From: Guillardia theta CCMP2712
Taxonomy: Eukaryota > Protista > Cryptophyta
Direction: 5' to 3'
NCBI RefSeq assembly: GCF_000315625.1
Contig: NW_005434620.1
Coordinates: forward strand, 360,104-424,103
Length of the DNA stretch: 64,000 nucleotides
The position numbers and the translations under genes were made by a program. The notes under the pieces were generated by a model. The model had not been told where the DNA came from. It saw only the letters and a list, made by a program, of their open reading frames with translations, and ran no database searches. Shown piece after piece: positions 944 through 63,666 of the stretch; positions within the stretch are counted from its first letter, which is position 1, and the number at the start of each line of letters is the position of its first letter.

Positions 944-1201
944 GGAGCACCTGGGGGGGGGGGCACTGCACAGAAGTGTAGGATAACGAGGTTGGCGTCT
1001 GTACAAAACCTGAATGCAAGAACAGGGTGGTTCGAAACAAGGCATGATTTGTTCGTATAACCTCTCGAAGAAATTGTTCGTGGTGTATCACTGATGCCAA
1101 CCCAACTTCAACCACGGCGCGCGTTCGAGGTGTTGACACATATGGAAATAAAAGTCATCCCACAGACCCTTCCAACACTGAGTTTATCTTCCATCCAGCC
1201 C

Positions 1202-2184
1202 TTACACTGATCGCACCAACGGACGGACCAGCGGTGGTTCTGGCGGCACAGTATGTCGCGCTTCCTTTACGAATACTGTGTGATCCTGTTTCATCATTTC
1301 AGACTGAGTCACGGTTCTCCATTCACCTTTCACCTCTGAAGTATGATCCGCTACATAGATCAACCAATAAATCTCTGCATCTTCAGTAATCACATACTTC
1401 TCCGTGAGGCAACACAGATACTGACCTAAAGCCAAGAACGGGCATATTTCCGGTTTGGTAGGATTGCAATACACATGTCTTGGATCTCCAGCGCGATGAC
1501 CTGACTGATCGTTCTTCTAATGAATGATGTAAAATCTCAGAGAGTCTTCAGAAAAGTCCATATGGTTGTACATCAAAGAAGCTGTGTTACTGGAGCGACT
1601 CATTAGATTCCAGCCAAGAATCATGAACGTTCGACCCCAAATGAACTCTCGGTCTAGCTTGGTCAACATGACCCTGCCCAATATCTGGTAGATACAAAAA
1701 GGCAGAGGTCCTTTCCTTGGTCAACTTTGCACTCCTGCCCCTAGCATTCTGCTTGTTGCATTTTCGTTTCAACCCGACATAATGTCCAGTCAAAGCAAGC
1801 TGGAATTGGGATAAACGTTCCACTGGCATGTCATAGCAATGTAAAATGTACATAAGTGCGGATCTGCAAGAACTGCATGTTTGAAAAGAAAGATCAGGTT
1901 TGACTCTCAGGCAGTGTGCTATCCAGAGCATGAAATGCCGCTTCTGAGCCAAGATATCTCTCAAATATTCTTGAGTAGGTAGTCCGTCTGTAATCTTGGT
2001 AATAACGTGGTCGGGCTATGTCCGCCTTCATGTCTGCAGTTATCAGGCCCATTTCATCGTCATTTGCAAATAAAAATTGAATGAATCGAACCATGTGACC
2101 TCGACACATGACACGGCTGCTTTCAGCGAGAGTGTTATTCAAAACAGCTGCTATATCGCGTTCCAGTTCTTCGGTATCTTCCAT
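1202..2184 (-). mobile_element. Decayed Crypton-type tyrosine recombinase (pseudogenised DNA transposon ORF)
   Basis: Manual minus-strand translation across frameshifts gives GKD/PLPFCIYQILGRVML...FMILGWNLMSRSSNTASLMYNHMDFSEDSLRFYIIH*KNDQSGHRAGDPRHVYCNPTKPEICPFLALGQY. This resembles Crypton-like recombinases (WNLMxR, KNDQ, PRHxYxNPxxPxICP). There is an in-frame TAG near 1518-1520, several frameshifts, no introns, and lower GC than the flanks. Confidence 0.75.
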
Positions 2185-51068: not shown

Positions 51069-54000
51069 ATGGATTTTGAGAATGAGAAGTGTGAGAAGGT
51101 AGTTCGACAATTAGTGCTGCAATTCTTTGTGATAATATCAAAGAAATGTAGCAACTCTGTTTGCTTCAGAAAATCCGACGATGGTGCGAAATTGCGATGC
51201 TTACAACTCGGTCTCGCTGTTGTGTCATCGGTGAATGTAAAGCTATCCAGATTCGAATTTGATGAAATGGTCTTGAGAGGAGTCCTTTCAAAATATCTCA
51301 AATCGTTGCTTGATTCTCACCTGGAATTCATCTTTGCCTCTTGGCGCTCGTGGTTCATTCAGAGAAAATCGTTTGAGCAACGTTGTATCCACGCCACAAA
51401 TCAATCAAAGCATCGGTTGAAAAGAAAGTACATTTCTGGATGGCAAGAAGGAATCAAGAATCACGAATTATTATTGCTGCAGGAAAACTACAGCTCCATT
51501 ATATCGAATTTAAGGGAGTTCGATAGTATGATACATGATGCTGAGACCAGTCTTCAACAAGTTCAAATGAATGTTGTTGCCCTTCAAAATATGTTAGTTC
51601 ACAAGCAAAATGCAAACTTTCTAACAATATTCCTGGCGGTGATTCAACGTATTTTCCTCGAATTTCGGTCGGAATTGTTTTCTGTCAAGCTGCACTACAC
51701 GAGTTGGGTTCTTGTTCATACAAACAACAGGGTTGCTAGGGCAAACTCATCCATCTCCACAAACCTCTGGAGGAAACGGCTCAAGAAGACAGCAATAGCA
51801 CGGTGGAGTAGCTACTCTCGAAGTAAACAGAGCAAAATAGCGGCAACAGAGAATTACAACAAGAGAAAATTACAAATCATCCTTTTTCATTGGAAACAAA
51901 GATGTTCAGATTCGAAAGATAACAGAGATCAGAAATTACGAGTCAAGAACAAGGTTACAAAGCAAAGACACTTGCAAACGATACGTCAATGGTGGGTCCT
52001 CGTAAATCATAGGAATCATGCGAAAAGGATCGGGAAAGTCGTGGCGGTACGGCGGAGGAGGGATCAAGGGTATGCAGCGCTTGCTGCGTGGGCGGCGGGC
52101 ACGAGGGAGCGGCGGCAGGGCGAGCGGGCAGCCGCGAGGGCGAGACAGAAGGGAGAGGCAGGCCTGCAGAGGAGGGCGCTAGAGGGCTGGTACGAGGCAG
52201 CAAGCGCAACAGATGGGGACCGGCTAGTCCAGACAGGGAGGAGGCGACGGAGGCTGAGGACTCTGCGGGAGGGGCTGGGAAGATGGGCGAGGGCGGCGGG
52301 AGACGGGCAGAGGACACGAGCGGTCTTGGCACGAGCCGGGAGGCAGCGGGGACGTCGGGAGGTATGGGAGGTACTCAGAGGCTGGAGAGGCTTGGCGAGA
52401 CACGGGAAGCAGGTAGGAAGGATAGGAGGAGTCGTGGCGGTACGGCGGAGGAGGGATCAAGGGTATGCAGCGCTTGCGGCGTGGGCGGCAGGCACGAGGG
52501 AGCGGCGGCAGGGCGAGCGGGCAGCCGCGAGGGCGAGACAGAAGGGAGAGGCAGGCCTGCAGAGGAGGGCGCTAGAGGGCTGGTACGAGGCAGCAAGCGC
52601 AACAGATGGGGACCGGCTAGTCCAGACAGGGAGGAGGCGACGGAGGCTGAGGACTCTGCGGGAGGGGCTGGGAAGATGGGCGAGGGCGGCAGGAGACGGG
52701 CAGAGGACACGAGCGGTCTTGGCACGAGCCGGGAGGCAGCGGGGACGTCGGGAGGTATGGGAGGTACTCAGAGGCTGGAGAGGCTTGGCGAGACACGGGA
52801 AGCAGGTAGGAAGGATAGGAGGAGTCGTGGCGGTACGGCGGAGGAGGGATCAAGGGTATGCAGCGCTTGCGGCGTGGGCGGCGGGCACGAGGGAGCGGCG
52901 GCAGGGCGAGCGGGCAGCCGCGAGGGCGAGACAGAAGGGAGAGGCAGGCCTGCAGAGGAGGGCGCTAGAGGGCTGGTACGAGGCAGCAAGCGCAACAGAT
53001 GGGGACCGGCTAGTCCAGACAGGGAGGAGGCGACGGAGGCTGAGGACTCTGCGGGAGGGGCTGGGAAGATGGGCGAGGGCGGCAGGAGACGGGCAGAGGA
53101 CACGAGCGGTCTTGGCACGAGCCGGGAGGCAGCGGGGACGTCGGGAGGTATGGGAGGTACTCAGAGGCTGGAGAGGCTTGGCGAGACACGGGAAGCAGGT
53201 AGGAAGGATAGGAGGAGTCGTGGCGGTACGGCGGAGGAGGGATCAAGGGTATGCAGCGCTTGCGGCGTGGGCGGCGGGCACGAGGGAGCGGCGGCAGGGC
53301 GAGCGGGCAGCCGCGAGGGCGAGACAGAAGGGAGAGGCAGGCCTGCAGAGGAGGGCGCTAGAGGGCTGGTACGAGGCAGCAAGCGCAACAGATGGGGACC
53401 GGCTAGTCCAGACAGGGAGGAGGCGACGGAGGCTGAGGACTCTGCGGGAGGGGCTGGGAAGATGGGCGAGGGCGGCAGGATACGGGCAGAGGACACGAGC
53501 GGTCTTGGCACGAGCCGGGAGGCAGCGGGGACGTCGGGAGGTATGGGAGGTACTCAGAGGCTGGAGAGGCTTGGCGAGACACGGGAAGCAGGTAGGAAGG
53601 ATAGGAGGAGTCGTGGCGGTACGGCGGAGGAGGGATCAAGGGTATGCAGCGCTTGCGGCGTGGGCGGCAGGCACGAGGGAGCGGCGGCAGGGCGAGCGGG
53701 CAGCCGCTGGGGCAATCAGGATTTGCAATCTTGGATTTCAGCTGCTTATTCGTGATTTGGTGTTGTTTTCGTTTTCTGGCTTCAGGGAGATGTGCTCTTT
53801 TGTCTCATCTCCTATGCTTCTTTGTCTTGTGTTTCTATATTTGTGGTCTGGAAGGGGGAGGTTGCGTCGCCAAGTTCAATGCATGAAAGCTCATCACACG
53901 GTTCGCAACATTAAGTTGGTTTTCAGGAGTTGGTGCACCTACTCGACCAGGAATGCTGATTCAAAGGCCGTGGTTTTCCAGATCAGCCAACGGCAAAGGT

Positions 54001-54425
54001 TTTTGCTCTATCGCAAGTGCTTTATGTTCTGGCGCAGACAATTGTACTTGAACGTTCGTGCTTTGTACGTTCTTGCTGAGGCGCTCAAAATGAATGACAA
54101 TGCAGCGGGGGCCATGCATGTTCTCAACCACATCACGTGGTTCCAGGTGCATGAAGGATCATGTCGTGAGTACATCCGCCTTTGCATGAAGGCGCGGGGG
54201 CATATATCAGAGCATCTGCAAGAGACCTGCTTGCTCCGAGACTCAGAGGCCTTAGACAGTGCTACGAGCCCCCTCAAGGCGGGGATAGACAGCCCTGTTG
54301 TCTCTGCCCGTCTTCTGCAACTAGTTCTCGACGCTAATCGCAACAGCGCATCAAGAGGAGTTAGTCAACAATCAATGTCGACTAGTGTCAAGTTAAATTT
54401 CAGCCTTGAAGAAGAGATGGCCTAG
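51069..54425 (+). CDS. Sfi1-like centrin-binding repeat protein (ORF probably includes read-through introns; true ends uncertain)
   Basis: Basic helical protein with regularly spaced L/F..W motifs (FASWR, IARWS, LFHWK, IRQWW, LAAWA, LEGWY, LGRWA, LRGWR, FRSWC, FMFWR) at roughly 33-residue intervals. Confidence 0.65.
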   Translation: MDFENEKCEKVVRQLVLQFFVIISKKCSNSVCFRKSDDGAKLRCLQLGLAVVSSVNVKLSRFEFDEMVLRGVLSKYLKSLLDSHLEFIFASWRSWFIQRKSFEQRCIHATNQSKHRLKRKYISGWQEGIKNHELLLLQENYSSIISNLREFDSMIHDAETSLQQVQMNVVALQNMLVHKQNANFLTIFLAVIQRIFLEFRSELFSVKLHYTSWVLVHTNNRVARANSSISTNLWRKRLKKTAIARWSSYSRSKQSKIAATENYNKRKLQIILFHWKQRCSDSKDNRDQKLRVKNKVTKQRHLQTIRQWWVLVNHRNHAKRIGKVVAVRRRRDQGYAALAAWAAGTRERRQGERAAARARQKGEAGLQRRALEGWYEAASATDGDRLVQTGRRRRRLRTLREGLGRWARAAGDGQRTRAVLARAGRQRGRREVWEVLRGWRGLARHGKQVGRIGGVVAVRRRRDQGYAALAAWAAGTRERRQGERAAARARQKGEAGLQRRALEGWYEAASATDGDRLVQTGRRRRRLRTLREGLGRWARAAGDGQRTRAVLARAGRQRGRREVWEVLRGWRGLARHGKQVGRIGGVVAVRRRRDQGYAALAAWAAGTRERRQGERAAARARQKGEAGLQRRALEGWYEAASATDGDRLVQTGRRRRRLRTLREGLGRWARAAGDGQRTRAVLARAGRQRGRREVWEVLRGWRGLARHGKQVGRIGGVVAVRRRRDQGYAALAAWAAGTRERRQGERAAARARQKGEAGLQRRALEGWYEAASATDGDRLVQTGRRRRRLRTLREGLGRWARAAGYGQRTRAVLARAGRQRGRREVWEVLRGWRGLARHGKQVGRIGGVVAVRRRRDQGYAALAAWAAGTRERRQGERAAAGAIRICNLGFQLLIRDLVLFSFSGFREMCSFVSSPMLLCLVFLYLWSGRGRLRRQVQCMKAHHTVRNIKLVFRSWCTYSTRNADSKAVVFQISQRQRFLLYRKCFMFWRRQLYLNVRALYVLAEALKMNDNAAGAMHVLNHITWFQVHEGSCREYIRLCMKARGHISEHLQETCLLRDSEALDSATSPLKAGIDSPVVSARLLQLVLDANRNSASRGVSQQSMSTSVKLNFSLEEEMA
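52038..53707 (+). repeat. 393-bp (131-codon) near-perfect coding tandem repeat, ~4.25 copies
   Basis: gtcgtggcggtacggcggagg starts at 52038, 52431, 52824, 53217 and 53610, with only a few substitutions between copies. Confidence 0.95.
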
Positions 54426-56552: not shown

Positions 56553-58349
56553 ATGCCAGTCTCTCCTCCCCGTCTGGTCATGAGCATAGTCCTCAGAGCT
56601 CTCGTCTCTCCGACGCCCTCCCGCCCTCCTCGGTCTCCCCGGTTGTTGAAGCCTAGCTCCATTGCCCTCATGACAATCGTGGCCCTGGTCCTCTTGGAGT
56701 CATGTCAGCCGAAGTTTGCGCCCCGGTGGACTGCTGCTGGACCATCCAAGAGCAACATGAAAGAACCTTCTGCGCCTGTTGACCAGGCGCCAGGAACAAG
56801 TGACGGGGTCTGCCATGATAGGCAATGTGAGGAGCTCAAGGCTGCGGAAACAACTCCGGAGGACTCTCCGTTCCCGCCTCCATATTCAACGACCCTATCG
56901 ATACCTGTGCGTGCAGAAGATCAGACGTCCTCAGATGCTGTCCCAGATCATCGGACGAGCTCGCTGCATGTTCCGCCAGGAACGGTCTTCTATCATGGGG
57001 TGACGGTGGGAATGACGGTTGTGGCAAGGGACAAGTACTCGAAAGTTGTCGCGGTGAAGGGCGCTCCGCCGTTCCTGATAAACGTCACTGACGTCGGGGA
57101 TACCAATACAGGGTCGTTCTTTGACCTGAGGAATGGAACATACTTCATCTATACCACGATATATTTCTCTCCTGCCCTCCTGAAGGCAAAAGCCCCCGAG
57201 GTGTGGGTGAGGTTGGGAGGGAAGCACATTCAGGGGAGCCCGTACAGGATGACTATCGACATGACCAAGATTGCTCGAAACTATCAGGAGCGGGTGGCGC
57301 TGGCGGAGAAAGTTGGAAGGTCCCATGACCTTGGAGGCCCCAATGGTTGCGACAGCGACTTTGTGATTGTGACTGGAGCGAGCACAAGCATGTTCGACAG
57401 GGCTGTCAACCTTGTGGGGTCGATACACCATTGGGCACCAGCCGTGCCTGTCGTGTTCTATGACTTAGGCCTGTCGACGGCACAGGTGGAAGATGTGCGG
57501 ACGTGGGAGAACGTGGACTACAGGAAGTTTGCGTTCAACGAGCATGCAGCGCACATGCGAGTCGATGAGAAGTTAACGCAGAACGGGACCAAGGGGGCGT
57601 ACTCGTGGCGAGCTCCGATCCTTGTCGAGGTCTTGGAGCAGCACCAGTGCATGCTCTGGCTGGATGCCGGCCTGGAGATCAGATCTGACCTCTCAGTCGT
57701 CATTGGGCATATCGCCGTGGACGGGAATTTCTTCGTGACCAACGGTTGGCCGAGTCCGAACCGCTTCACGCATCCGGCGGTGGTTGAGTGGCACGGGCTG
57801 AAGGAGAAGGACTTCTTCCTGCCCGACCCCACAGGCACTGGCATGAGAAACGAGATCGAGGCGTGCGGGGGAATCCAAGGCTATCGGCGAGGGAGCCTTG
57901 CGCACAGGGAGGTTCTGTCAGGATATTACATATGCCTCATGGATCCGACCTGCATCGCGCCTCCGAACGCGTCAAAGATGAATTTCCGCCAAGACCAGAC
58001 TGTCTTGAACGTCGTGCTGGCATCTTACAGGCTGAAGATCCCGCTGGATTCTCCCGAGTACTTCATCCTTCTTCCGCACACAGCAAGGAAGTATTGGGAG
58101 CACCCTATTCCGAAGCATCAGTTTCCTGTTCACGAGGACGGGACTTTCCGCCCTTGTGACAAGGGAGAGATCTTCAAAGACAACAAGTGTGTGAGGTGTG
58201 AGGCTCAGGACGGCATGTGCGAGGATGATGTCTTGGATGAAGCAGATGGAGCAGAATACTGCGAGGATCTCGTCATCTTCATCAGGAGAGCGTTCGAGCC
58301 GAAGCTGTTTGAGGACAAGTTGCGGTACAGACTGATAGGAGGCATATAA
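56553..58349 (+). CDS. Type-II membrane protein: filamin-like Ig repeat + DUF1647-like (GT-A glycosyltransferase-like) domain
   Basis: Intronless 598 aa. TM IALMTIVALVLL; filamin-like DLRNGTYFI...GGKHIQGSPY; FVIVTGAS...VVFYDLGL...YSWRAPIL..VL....MLWLDAG...NFRQDQTVLNV resembles DUF1647. Confidence 0.75.
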   Translation: MPVSPPRLVMSIVLRALVSPTPSRPPRSPRLLKPSSIALMTIVALVLLESCQPKFAPRWTAAGPSKSNMKEPSAPVDQAPGTSDGVCHDRQCEELKAAETTPEDSPFPPPYSTTLSIPVRAEDQTSSDAVPDHRTSSLHVPPGTVFYHGVTVGMTVVARDKYSKVVAVKGAPPFLINVTDVGDTNTGSFFDLRNGTYFIYTTIYFSPALLKAKAPEVWVRLGGKHIQGSPYRMTIDMTKIARNYQERVALAEKVGRSHDLGGPNGCDSDFVIVTGASTSMFDRAVNLVGSIHHWAPAVPVVFYDLGLSTAQVEDVRTWENVDYRKFAFNEHAAHMRVDEKLTQNGTKGAYSWRAPILVEVLEQHQCMLWLDAGLEIRSDLSVVIGHIAVDGNFFVTNGWPSPNRFTHPAVVEWHGLKEKDFFLPDPTGTGMRNEIEACGGIQGYRRGSLAHREVLSGYYICLMDPTCIAPPNASKMNFRQDQTVLNVVLASYRLKIPLDSPEYFILLPHTARKYWEHPIPKHQFPVHEDGTFRPCDKGEIFKDNKCVRCEAQDGMCEDDVLDEADGAEYCEDLVIFIRRAFEPKLFEDKLRYRLIGGI

Positions 58350-58853: not shown

Positions 58854-60672
58854 ATGGTGCGATGGTCAGCGATGCTGCTTGTCACGATGCTGGCGGACGT
58901 GATGAGAGGATGGGGAGGAGGGACAGGGATCATGGAGAGAGGACAAGACATGCTGGTTGGAGCAGGAGCACCTGCTCCTGCTCCTGCTCCTGCTCCGTTC
59001 TTGGACTTGTTGAAAAAGAACGACGAGTGGGCTACCATTCGCGCCTCCATGACCAACTTGGAGCAGGAGTCTTCGCTCTCCATGGTTGAACTCCTCAGTT
59101 TTCTTCGCAACGGCACCAATGGAACAAGATCTAAGGAGCTGGTCAAGGACTTCTTCGATCCTAAAGGAAAGTTTGTGCGATCTTGCCGTACAGAGATCGA
59201 GCAACGCCGGACTCTTGTCTTGAAGCATCCCTCCATGCTTTCATGGTGGTTGCCATCTGTTGCTCTTGTTTTCATTGTTCAGCTCGAAGAACAATTCATC
59301 GTGTACTGCGACAGAAAGGAGAGCAATAAGGATTCTGCCTTCAAGTTCCCACATGTGTACGCCAGTGCCGCTCAGATCAGCAACCATGCTTTTGTCCATG
59401 AATCCTTCCGGTCCTGGTTTGGAGTCCTGCCAGAAAAGCTTGTCCTCCTCAACCCGCCTGAAGACCCACACCTGCTCTCCTCCAGCAGACTTTTTTATGT
59501 GAAACTGCCACGTCCAGTACTGGGGAGCGAAGTGATTGGGGTCGTAGCCAGCCGATCAAACCATCTGTATGTCTTTCAAGCTGACATCCCAACGTTGGCA
59601 GGACTGAGCATGCCATCTCTGCATGAGAAGGCTCGAGAGCTGATGCTGATGAGGAAGGGGATGCTGAACATGCGAGGAGTGAAACCTCCTGCTGGGTTCG
59701 ACGTTGACCCGAAGAGGATCGCTGAGTTTGTGCAGAACCGCTCTGAGCACAAGGCCCCTGTACGTGTCAGTCTTGGGGATGTAGCGCATCGAGGAGGAGA
59801 GACGAGGAGACAGAGGCATGAACGATCGCTGATCGACTGGTTTGCAGACCAACTGCCAACGTGCTATAACCTGGTGAAGGGACTCAGGAAGGGGAGGTGC
59901 TTTGCGATCACGCTGGAGAGGGAAATGAAGCAAGCGAGCGGGAGGCAAGGGCACAACAGCATGTGGCAGAGCGTGTTCTCTACTTTCATGAACGCCCTCC
60001 TTCCCTCGAATACAAGGATGAAGTTCGTTGGGATCGTCGCACGTGCGGCCAACGGTTCTCAGGTTTTCTTCATTCCTTCCAACATGTCGAAAGTGTCCGC
60101 ATCGCGTATCCTCACTTACGTGCCCGAGCAAAGTGAAGAAACAGCAGGAACAATGCCAAAGAGGAAGATCCTAACGGTCTCTACCATCTATGCAAAGATG
60201 GGGTACAAGCTGTCGTACCCGAACTTGCCATGTGTGGTGGTAGAATCCTCGAACAAGACAGACAAAAGGTGGCAATTCGATTTCTATCCGATGGAGTGTT
60301 GCAAGATTGTGCTGGAAGAGGAAGGTTCCGAGAGATTCAAAGGCGGGAGGGAGTGGATCAGGCAATCGGATGCTGATTACTTCAGCATCACAAAATTGCA
60401 TCGAGACTTCTTGAGGAATGGCGATGAGAAGATTTTCGAAATCTTGCAACCTCCTGGGGAGATTTTTGCACCCGCCAGAGGGCCCTGGGTTCCTTGCGAC
60501 GAGAACGAGAAGCCTTGGGAGGGAAATTGGACGAATTTGGAGGACGGGGAAGAAGGCGATGCAAACATGAAGAAATTTGTAGGTCCCGAGCGCATTGTAC
60601 AGATAAGAAGCCACAAGGATTTGGAAGCAATATGGAGAGCTCAAGAGAAGGCAAAGAAGGAGGGGGGCGAGG

Positions 60673-60708
<36 letters not shown>

Positions 60709-61505
60709 TCGAGGACGAGGTCGAGGTCGAGGTCGAAGACGAGGAAAAGGAGGAGGAACAGGATGAAGAGGAGAAGGAACAGGAGGAGGGAAAGGAGGGA
60801 GATTTGAGGTGGGATGCGATGGAAGCACAGGGGGAAGGAGGAGGAGAGAAGGATGCAGACAAGTCAGCGTCTGCAGCAGGGGCCGATGAAAGCTCTGTCG
60901 AGATCAGCCTGTCGGAGTCAGAAGAAGGGAAGGAGCACGGAGGGATGGCAAAGATGCTGTCCGAGTACAAGAGTAAGCTGACGGTGCTGACGGCAAGGAT
61001 GGGCCCTCTGCTCATGTCGCAGATCAACCAGGGATGGAATCTGATGTACAAGGAGGACAGTCCCAAGAGCGAGCAGCTGGGGTTTCCCAGGCTGCGAGAT
61101 CTGCTGTTGGCGCTTCCTGACTGCGTGAGACTGGAATGGGATCGAGAGGCCAACGACTACGTCGTGTTCTTACGACATCCCAAGGACAAGGCTGAAAGCA
61201 TAATCAAACTAAAGGAGCAGGGAGATGCCTCGAACGAGGAGAGCGACGGAGGAGTAGGAGCAGGAAGGTTGTTACGCCCGTCACGGCAGGATGGGGATGT
61301 CATGTCATTGTCGCCTGAAGTGACGGAAGATGATGGGGAACGGGAGAGAAAGAACAACCAGGTGTTTCAGAAGCTGGGCAAGATGGAAGATGATTTGAAA
61401 TGCTTGCTGGATGAAATCGACAACAAGCAGGAGGAGGAGGAGTGGGGAGGGACAAGATTGAGAGCAAGAGTGGTGAGGACAGGGAGGAAAGAGCTGTTGA
61501 TGTGA
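58854..61505 (+). CDS. Intronless PAZ-like + acidic tract + LOTUS/OST-HTH domain protein with hydrophobic N-terminus
   Basis: LTVSTIYAKMGYKLSYPNLPCVVV...FYPMECCKIV (60168-60311) matches the Argonaute PAZ C-terminal signature. GPLLMSQINQGWNLMYKEDSPKSEQLGFPRLRDLLLALPDCVRL (~61000-61135) matches the LOTUS consensus. Confidence 0.75.
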
Positions 61506-62368
61506 ACAAACCCTTCTTGACCTTAAACGTCGACCGCAACATCAATATGCAAGGTGGGAATGCGATGATGCCGTCTGAGAGTGGGAAACCTGAGCACCAT
61601 GTAAGAAATTCTTCTAACTATCTTCAATTCATGAGAGAGGACACAAACTCATACCAAAAGCTGTTGGAGAAGCTGGAAAGCAGATTTGAAAAAGACAAAT
61701 GTCTGGTGCTAGGGCAGGGAAAACTTGCTGAGCTTGTCAAAGGTTCTCGTGCAAAGGAGGAGGTCAAGGAGGTCAAGGAGGTCAAGGAGGTCAAGGAGGT
61801 CAAGGAGGAGAAGCAACAGCATCTACAACTACAGGGATTGCTTGAGAAGGAGAAGAGTCTTGAGCAGCAGCAGCGGCAGGAGCATCGGAAGCAGCAGGAG
61901 AAAGCGCTGGAACGGGGACGGTGGCAGAGGCAGGCAGTTGAAGTGGAGGGCACGGAGGTAGTGCACCAACGGCTAGGGGGGGATCAGAAAGTAGAAGCGC
62001 TGAAAGCTTGCCTGTCCAAGATGCAGGAGGGACTGAAGCTATACTTCGATGCTGCTCAGCAAGCGCTGGAGACATTCTGCCGTTCGGATGAGGGAGGAGG
62101 AGGAGAGGTAGAGAGGAGAGTGGTTCGTCCCTACCCGAAGGAGGGGGAGGAGAGGGAGGGAAGAGGGGAGAAGAGGGAGCAAGGGAGGAGGGACGCGGGC
62201 AGGAGCGGAGAGACAGAGCGAGGACTAGTGCGGAGTGTCAGGAAGGACAAGTCGATCCGGGAGTTCTTCATGGAGGAGCTTGCGGATTTGTCTGCTGCTT
62301 ACTCCGTCTTGGGAGTCCCGAAGAATCTGACGATAAGGGAGGAGGAGGGAGGAGAGAGGAGCAGCTGA
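61442..62368 (+). CDS. Coiled-coil E/K/Q-rich ORF, probably the continuation (next exon) of the PAZ-LOTUS gene
   Basis: 308-codon ORF overlapping the end of the upstream ORF by 64 nt in another frame, with (KEV)n repeats. Confidence 0.5.
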   Translation: MGRDKIESKSGEDREERAVDVNKPFLTLNVDRNINMQGGNAMMPSESGKPEHHVRNSSNYLQFMREDTNSYQKLLEKLESRFEKDKCLVLGQGKLAELVKGSRAKEEVKEVKEVKEVKEVKEEKQQHLQLQGLLEKEKSLEQQQRQEHRKQQEKALERGRWQRQAVEVEGTEVVHQRLGGDQKVEALKACLSKMQEGLKLYFDAAQQALETFCRSDEGGGGEVERRVVRPYPKEGEEREGRGEKREQGRRDAGRSGETERGLVRSVRKDKSIREFFMEELADLSAAYSVLGVPKNLTIREEEGGERSS

Positions 62369-62899
62369 GTGAAAAGTGAGATGAACTCGTTATGCTGCCT
62401 CGACTCTCTGCCACTGTTTCTTCAATCTCTGCTCCCATCTTTGTCCTCCCCTAACCTTCCTCTCCTCTCCTCTCCCTCCCTCCCTCCCTCCCTGCTCCCT
62501 GCTTCTCCCTCCCTCGCTCCTTTGTCTTCTCTCCCCTTCCTCCCTCCTCCCTCCTCCCTCCTCCCTCCTCCCTGCTTTCACTCCACTCCGTCTCCCCTCT
62601 CACGCCTTCCTTCCACACTTCAACACGCATGAAGATCCCTGCGGCTCCTCTTAGAGGGTCGAATGAGGAGGAAGGAGGAAGAGCAATCGACGAACCGAAC
62701 GAGCAAGAGGACTACGAAGAGGACCGGAATTGTACTGGGTCGATGATCCTGTTCTGTTCGTGTCCAACAACGCCATTGCTGGGGGGGGGGATCCTAACAT
62801 GCTTCTAGGGAGGGGGGGAGTCACGCTCCATCCTCTCCTCGCCTCACCTTCCAAGATTGGATTGCACCATGCCGAGCCACTCCTTGTAAGGCAAGCTAC

Positions 62900-63100
62900 N
62901 NNNNNNNNNNNNNNNNNNNNNNNNNNNNNNNNNNNNNNNNNNNNNNNNNNNNNNNNNNNNNNNNNNNNNNNNNNNNNNNNNNNNNNNNNNNNNNNNNNNN
63001 NNNNNNNNNNNNNNNNNNNNNNNNNNNNNNNNNNNNNNNNNNNNNNNNNNNNNNNNNNNNNNNNNNNNNNNNNNNNNNNNNNNNNNNNNNNNNNNNNNNN
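62900..63100. other. Assembly gap
   Basis: Run of N. Confidence 1.
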
Positions 63101-63320
63101 CCTCCTACCCTCCTCCTCCTCCTCCTCCTCCTCCTCCTCCTCCTCCTCCTCCTCCTCCTCCTCCTCCTCCTCCTCCTCCTCCTCCTCCTCCTCCTCCTCC
63201 TCCTCCTCCTCCTCCTCCTCCTCCTCCTCCTCCTCCTCCTCCTCCTCCTCCTCCTCCTCCTCCTCCTCCTCCTCCTCCTCCTCCTCCTCCTCCTCCTCCT
63301 CTCTCCTCCTCCTCTCCTCC
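63101..63320. repeat. (CCT)n microsatellite
   Basis: Directly visible. Confidence 0.95.
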
Positions 63321-63666
63321 CCATTGTCTCTTTATTCCTCACAGTCTCTTGTTACAGATGTTACAATCCTCCAACTGTCCCTTGCAGATCTTTCCACCTG
63401 TCCTCCCTGCTTCAGTTTCCCACCTCCTCCAGCTGACTCCCAGCTAACTCCCAGCTCCTCCTTCCCACCTGTCAGCGTCGTCTCCTCCCATTCCCCACCA
63501 GACCCGGTCGCAGTGTTCTGCTGGAAGTCAGCTGGAGTCGATTCTGTGGCTGCTTTACCTGCAGGCAGATGCTGCTGCTGTTCTGCGCCCACACGCCCAG
63601 GCGGTTGCGCTGGACTCTTGAGCAGATGACTTTCACCCTTCCCTGTGAGTGAAGAGGAGCAGGAGG

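Follow-up and report, generated by a model that had tools for sequence, protein, structure and literature searches.

Guillardia theta CCMP2712, a cryptophyte, carries a gene whose predicted product of 883 amino acids (aa) appears to combine an Argonaute-type PAZ domain with a LOTUS (OST-HTH) domain, the two being separated by a long acidic tract. The gene lies on the plus strand of a 64,000-nucleotide stretch of RefSeq assembly GCF_000315625.1 (contig NW_005434620.1, positions 360,104 to 424,103 of the forward strand); this stretch, analysed at its full length, is called the window throughout, and positions are counted from its first letter. PAZ has been studied almost only within Argonaute and Dicer, and LOTUS is a module of animal germ-granule and PIWI-interacting RNA (piRNA) proteins. 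Their pairing in one polypeptide seems to be undescribed and would represent a new architecture of known domains. We directly observe a reading frame, its sequence-level domain matches, the absence of other domains and the orphan status of the protein. The explanation that we prefer, with a probability of about 0.5, is that this is a working, lineage-specific gene in which a PAZ domain derived from Argonaute and a LOTUS domain are joined over an acidic linker, and that its product serves as a non-catalytic, RNA-binding adaptor. The genome in which the gene resides has no evident canonical RNA interference (RNAi) pathway, and the PAZ domain may have been retained for a purpose other than silencing.

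The reading frame and its domains

The open reading frame (ORF) is a coding sequence rather than a chance frame, as follows from its stop-free length and from a codon-position GC pattern like that of its neighbours. At the base composition of the ORF itself, 883 codons without a stop would arise with a probability of about 5e-20; when the 64-kb window was shuffled 30 times, no open frame exceeded 317 codons, and the remaining five frames across the ORF contain 11 to 39 stops. GC content at the first, second and third codon positions is 0.57, 0.39 and 0.63, against 0.57, 0.44 and 0.67 in the gene upstream, and the pattern is kept in all sections of the ORF, the PAZ and LOTUS parts included. Eight additional in-frame ATG codons are found within the first 128 codons.

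Residues 378-486 very probably form a PAZ domain of the Argonaute type. The Pfam profile for the family (PF02170, gathering cut-off 28.8 bits) matches this segment over profile positions 3-103 of 123 (101 positions, 82%), scoring 22.6 bits (E 1.1e-4) when the whole protein is compared with the Pfam library, 25.3 bits (E 1.6e-5) when the piece aa 335-600 is used, and 26.9 bits (E 2.4e-4 per genome) in a six-frame search of the 87-Mb assembly, with all E-values corrected library- or genome-wide. All neighbours listed in an ESM-Atlas feature search with aa 230-595 were PAZ clusters, the best of them at 0.96 with 183 shared features, a level reached by about one in 100 shuffled proteins. When aa 430-495 were compared with the PDB using phmmer, weak single-stretch matches (E ~0.4) were obtained to 1si2_A (eukaryotic translation initiation factor 2C 1) and 1r4k_A (Argonaute 1), in both cases close to the C-terminus of the chain; apart from these, the search gave summed WD-repeat noise. 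The PAZ part includes the motifs TV..Y446....Y451...Y455-PNLPC460 and Y478-PMECCKIV486. YPNLPC...YPMECCKIV is presumably the signature of the AGO clade, as in the PAZ domains of human AGO1/2. The spacing of Y446 and Y451 presumably matches that of the two pocket tyrosines of human AGO PAZ, and F391 and F405/F406 presumably align with pocket residues of human AGO1 PAZ. An AlphaFold2 model of aa 60-595, made from the single sequence with no alignment, had a predicted local distance difference test (pLDDT) value of 38, and its Foldseek matches had template modelling (TM) scores of ~0.1.

The second domain, at approximately aa 703-775, is probably a LOTUS winged helix, a call that we make because three weak lines agree on the family. 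The Pfam profile (PF12872, gathering cut-off 23.8 bits) matches aa 740-768 with 14.1-17.4 bits (E 0.043 to 0.0053, in Pfam library and six-frame genome searches), which taken by itself is at noise level. In the ESM feature search, OST-HTH clusters were nearest to aa 695-800 (0.93), with 203 shared features; 170 are typical of true family members. In a single planned comparison, BLASTP against the one clear LOTUS exon of the genome gave E 6e-6 over the motif LGF..L....PD...E. A single-sequence AlphaFold2 model of aa 690-810 (pLDDT 52) has a predicted helix-helix-strand-strand arrangement at aa 737-774; a long, artefactual helix governed the outcome of fold searches with this model. Sequence support is stronger for PAZ than for LOTUS.

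The LOTUS exon that served for comparison is found at locus L002 (G000:C22:525210-528419), positions 1486-1704 of the minus strand. It is a stand-alone copy, scoring 39-40 bits on PF12872 and also matching DUF7515 weakly, and is arranged tail-to-tail with an ORF resembling acetyl-CoA carboxylase carboxyltransferase.

Pfam searches of the ORF gave no MID, PIWI, RNase III, Tudor or helicase domain, and NCBIfam and PHROGs searches of the protein gave no match. Argonaute N and L1 domains would fall in the stretch before PAZ, here aa 60-375; this stretch shows neither, so the case for an Argonaute origin is carried by PAZ. An arrangement of PAZ, acidic tract and LOTUS, lacking MID, PIWI and RNase III, is nonetheless supported at the level of sequence. 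Much of this had been proposed in an earlier, sequence-only reading of the same DNA. The ORF that it placed at 58854-61505 was recovered at exactly these coordinates, on the plus strand. The Argonaute-type PAZ signature that it reported is supported by PF02170 (E 1.6e-5 to 2.4e-4) and by the all-PAZ ESM neighbours; its LOTUS signature finds support too, more weakly than PAZ, in the sub-threshold profile match, the ESM score of 0.93 and the BLASTP E-value of 6e-6. Between the two, the long acidic tract that it described is present over about 100 aa, partly as a (CGAGGA)15 microsatellite, and the lack of MID, PIWI and RNase III that it remarked upon is borne out by the Pfam searches.

RNA-silencing genes and relatives of the protein

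Profiles of the relevant families were searched in six frames against the whole assembly (87,145,349 bases in 669 contigs), which may itself be incomplete. PAZ was found in this ORF only. There was no Piwi domain (PF02171) in the assembly at E<=1, although Thermus and Methanocaldococcus controls were positive, and neither ArgoN nor ArgoL1 nor RNA-dependent RNA polymerase (RdRP) was found by the same six-frame search. A PIWI domain split between exons should have been detected, because the same method caught a PAZ domain at 27 bits and a LOTUS exon at 40 bits. One match to ArgoMid, on contig C287, was rejected as noise (E 0.07, with an internal TGA and no Argonaute-like ORF nearby). RNase III occurs at a single place in the assembly, locus L009 (G000:C28:296890-300162), where a 277-aa ORF at 1189-2022 (+) carries one bacterial-type RNase III domain (PF14622, E 1.4e-31) behind an N-terminal extension of ~80 aa. 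This enzyme is possibly organellar; it was ruled out as a Dicer, having one domain instead of two and being on a different contig from the PAZ ORF.

Canonical RNAi is thus not evident, at the level of sequence, in the genome that carries the PAZ-LOTUS gene. The absence of an evident RNAi pathway weakens the case for a small-RNA adaptor and favours that for an exapted remnant of Argonaute. The sequence-only reading had suggested a non-slicing small-RNA adaptor and a survey of the genome for Argonaute and Dicer. That survey was run and found neither; of the suggestion, the architecture stands as far as sequence can say, and the small-RNA role does not fare as well, given the absence of Piwi, ArgoN, ArgoL1 and RdRP and the single bacterial-type RNase III. 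A role with small RNAs is therefore doubtful.

The protein is an orphan and appears to be lineage-restricted. The assembly contains no paralogue of the ORF. Comparison of aa 1-595 with 1.84 billion representative proteins using HMMER gave two matches, both of them tandem-repeat artefacts that sum short matches of 30%. Word-index searches returned no relatives, whether the query was the full-length protein, its PAZ region or the LOTUS piece, and scans of metagenome and viral contigs for relatives were blank. Whole-protein phmmer matches in the PDB, and paralogue matches to the acidic part, were compositional and reflected low complexity only. The fold-search matches of the two poor AlphaFold2 models (by Foldseek and, for LOTUS, by a wide VIA-align search) were to gyrase, KaiC, proteasome ATPases and long helices, and are meaningless, speaking neither for nor against either fold.

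By k-mer presence, the stretch occurs in 12 sequencing runs from 5 studies, in which the share of its words ranges from 0.07 to 0.90. The assemblies of these runs amount to ~30-70 Mb, below the 87 Mb of the genome, and their designation as RNA is a guess. This is compatible with a largely unspliced locus whose transcripts are covered to varying degrees.

Origin, function and competing explanations

From these observations we infer an origin, RNA binding, partners and a location for the protein as follows. The gene may be the PAZ-bearing remainder of an ancestral Argonaute from which the MID-PIWI lobe was lost, and a LOTUS module would have been gained in a lineage otherwise without canonical RNAi. 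The PAZ pocket would hold the 3' end of a single-stranded RNA, and the LOTUS domain would either bind G-rich RNA or recruit a DEAD-box helicase, with the acidic tract, presumably disordered, acting as a flexible or autoinhibitory spacer. Both proposed LOTUS activities have precedents, since LOTUS domains are described as binding G-rich and G-quadruplex (G4) RNA (PMC7498356) and as recruiting Vasa (PMC8331183).

The known systems that come closest each share part of this design. Like Argonautes of the AGO clade (N-L1-PAZ-L2-MID-PIWI), the protein has a PAZ domain with the Y-P-x-L-P-C ... Y/L-P-x-E-x-C-x-I-V signature, placed ~375 residues from the N-terminus, roughly as in Argonautes that have N-terminal extensions. 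Unlike them, it has no MID or PIWI, either in the ORF or elsewhere in the assembly, and no detectable N or L1, and it carries the acidic tract and LOTUS instead; it could have neither a slicer nor a 5'-end pocket. Dicer (helicase-platform-PAZ-RNase IIIa/b) likewise has PAZ outside Argonaute, but the protein described here is without RNase III and helicase, and the motif in its PAZ is that of Argonautes. With LOTUS proteins such as Oskar, TDRD5/7, MARF1, MIP-1/2 and the NYN-LOTUS proteins it shares a probable LOTUS domain beside long disordered regions and another RNA-related module. Elsewhere, LOTUS is known to be combined with Tudor, NYN, RRM and OSK domains, whereas here its partner would be PAZ; a single LOTUS copy is present, the N-terminal half of which has diverged beyond recognition by the hidden Markov model (HMM).

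A parallel of another kind is the PIWI-like protein of Leishmania, which has no PAZ and occurs in an RNAi-negative species (PMC3528672). In both cases an orphaned piece of Argonaute would have been retained without bona fide RNAi machinery, and the two are mirror images, with PIWI lacking PAZ in Leishmania and PAZ lacking PIWI in G. theta. No PAZ+LOTUS fusion was found in ten of the 13 papers naming both domains, going by titles and abstracts, which agrees, to that extent, with the statement in the sequence-only reading that no described fusion was known.

Several observations weigh against the preferred explanation, and other explanations draw upon them. Every PAZ score (22.6-26.9 bits) is under the 28.8-bit gathering cut-off of PF02170, although the E-values are significant. 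The PAZ and LOTUS folds found no structural confirmation in the poor single-sequence AlphaFold2 models (pLDDT 38 and 52), and no trace of Argonaute N or L1 was found in aa 60-375 by Pfam at E<=10. With no Argonaute or Dicer found in the assembly, the protein has no obvious small-RNA ligand. No orthologue was found in the HMMER, word-index, metagenome or viral contig searches, and exact look-ups of the protein, made for nine alternative starts, were blank in a collection of 15 billion proteins that may not include the records of this genome. What points to expression is k-mer presence, in assemblies that are only guessed to be RNA. The LOTUS call is the weaker of the two, since its profile score lies below 23.8 bits, covers about half of the profile (positions 41-69 of 71) and stands at the same E-value level as noise matches to TNF, EST1 and Umbravirus_LDM. 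It could be, then, that PAZ is real and LOTUS a chance match or a generic helix-turn-helix, leaving a truncated and rapidly evolving remnant of Argonaute that has a disordered tail but no further module for binding RNA or a helicase. The 14-17 bits of the OST-HTH match would be accounted for in this way, as would the blank word search with the C-terminal piece and the poor C-terminal fold model with its meaningless matches. We consider such a remnant unlikely because the ESM search gave 0.93 with 203 shared features, over the 170 typical of true members, and because BLASTP found the LGF..L....PD...E motif in common with a clear LOTUS exon at E 6e-6.

If PAZ and LOTUS were both false positives, the gene would be a lineage-specific orphan with an acidic disordered region, unrelated to RNA silencing. 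All scores are indeed below curated thresholds, phmmer found no Argonaute at significant E among 1.84 billion proteins and the PDB, and there is no structural support; but the PAZ match reaches E 1.6e-5 after library correction over 101 of 123 positions, and E 2.4e-4 in the six-frame genome search, an independent ESM method returned PAZ clusters only, at a level attained by ~1 in 100 shuffled proteins, and the motif region matches solved Argonaute PAZ domains at the corresponding place. We regard a double false positive as improbable on these grounds. The likelihood that the locus is a non-functional relic, whether a dying fragment of Argonaute or an unexpressed ORF, is very slight indeed: a frame of 883 codons does not remain open by chance, its codon-position GC signature is intact throughout, and up to 0.90 of its words are present in several transcriptome-sized assemblies from the 5 studies. 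What speaks for a relic is that there are no orthologues and no identical annotated protein in the collection, that two microsatellites lie in frame, and that the case for expression is one of k-mer presence.

Should the preferred explanation of a working PAZ-LOTUS adaptor be correct, a PAZ domain maintained without detectable PIWI, Dicer or RdRP would mean that a module for binding RNA 3' ends can survive the loss of RNAi and be put to new use, and the functional link between PAZ and LOTUS would be extended, in a distant protist, to one and the same polypeptide. A bolder form of this proposal, which we hold to be highly improbable, would make the protein the last piece of the Argonaute of the cryptophyte host, now reading RNA 3' ends independently of PIWI and passing RNA to a DEAD-box helicase through LOTUS, maybe acting on nucleomorph transcripts in the periplastid compartment. 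If that were true, a pathway of RNA-end recognition would be running without Argonaute, Dicer or RdRP.

The N-terminus, remaining features and neighbouring sequence

The features of the gene are collected in Table 1.

Table 1. Features of the PAZ-LOTUS gene, in window coordinates.
Feature	Position	Strand	Basis
PAZ-LOTUS ORF, complete, 883 aa and TGA stop	58854..61505	+	903-codon open frame
Run of hydrophobic residues WSAMLLVTMLA (aa 4-14), weakly resembling a signal peptide	58863..58895	+	Kyte-Doolittle
(CCTGCT)4.3 microsatellite coding an Ala-Pro repeat ahead of F49	58971..58996	+	repeat search
Region of no recognisable family, aa 60-375	59031..59978	+	Pfam, 0 families at E<=10
Predicted PAZ domain, aa 378-486	59985..60311	+	PF02170 profile, ESM features, weak PDB matches
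Trp-rich linker after PAZ, aa 487-595, no family	60312..60638	+	Pfam search
Acidic low-complexity tract, aa 596-700, 46% D+E	60639..60953	+	composition
(CGAGGA)15 microsatellite, core of the acidic tract	60668..60757	+	repeat search
Probable LOTUS/OST-HTH winged helix, ~aa 703-775	60960..61178	+	PF12872, ESM features, BLASTP
LOTUS half covered by the HMM, aa 740-768, LGFPRLRDLLLALPDCVRLE...	61071..61157	+	PF12872 profile 41-69 of 71
Charged C-terminal tail, aa 776-883, no family	61179..61502	+	Pfam search

In cryptophyte plastid leaders, Phe occupies the first position of the transit peptide, directly after the site of signal-peptide cleavage (PMC3045029). The N-terminus of the PAZ-LOTUS protein looks weakly signal-like and does not resemble a canonical bipartite leader of this kind. 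Its hydrophobic region comprises ~9-11 residues, aa 6-14 or, at its widest, aa 4-14, after one Arg, with an 11-aa Kyte-Doolittle mean of ~2.1, and the 40 residues that follow have a net charge of -2. The first Phe is F49, ~35 residues beyond the hydrophobic run and away from any plausible cleavage site. Targeting to the periplastid compartment or plastid, as the sequence-only reading had raised, may occur but finds no support in these features, the hydrophobic run being short, F49 distant and the net charge negative.

The upstream neighbour, at 56553-58349 (+), is an uninterrupted ORF of 598 aa that ends ~500 bp before the PAZ-LOTUS ORF; it has a hydrophobic N-terminal segment and matches DUF1647 above the Pfam cut-off (E 9.4e-7, 29.1 bits). 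Downstream, an ORF at 61547-62368 (+), in a different frame from the PAZ-LOTUS ORF, encodes a Lys/Glu-rich product with (KEV)n repeats. Its first ATG (~61547) is ~42 nt past the PAZ-LOTUS stop; this ORF may be a gene of its own or else supply an alternative 3' exon. Further along, at 62896-63342, an assembly gap, seen as a run of N, is flanked by a very long trinucleotide repeat, which would be translated into poly-Ser from one strand and into poly-Arg from the other. The window also has a local GC peak of 0.655 at 52001-54000, with a GC skew of +0.41 and an AT skew of +0.26, falling within the overlapping long ORFs 51069-54422 and 52283-53752.

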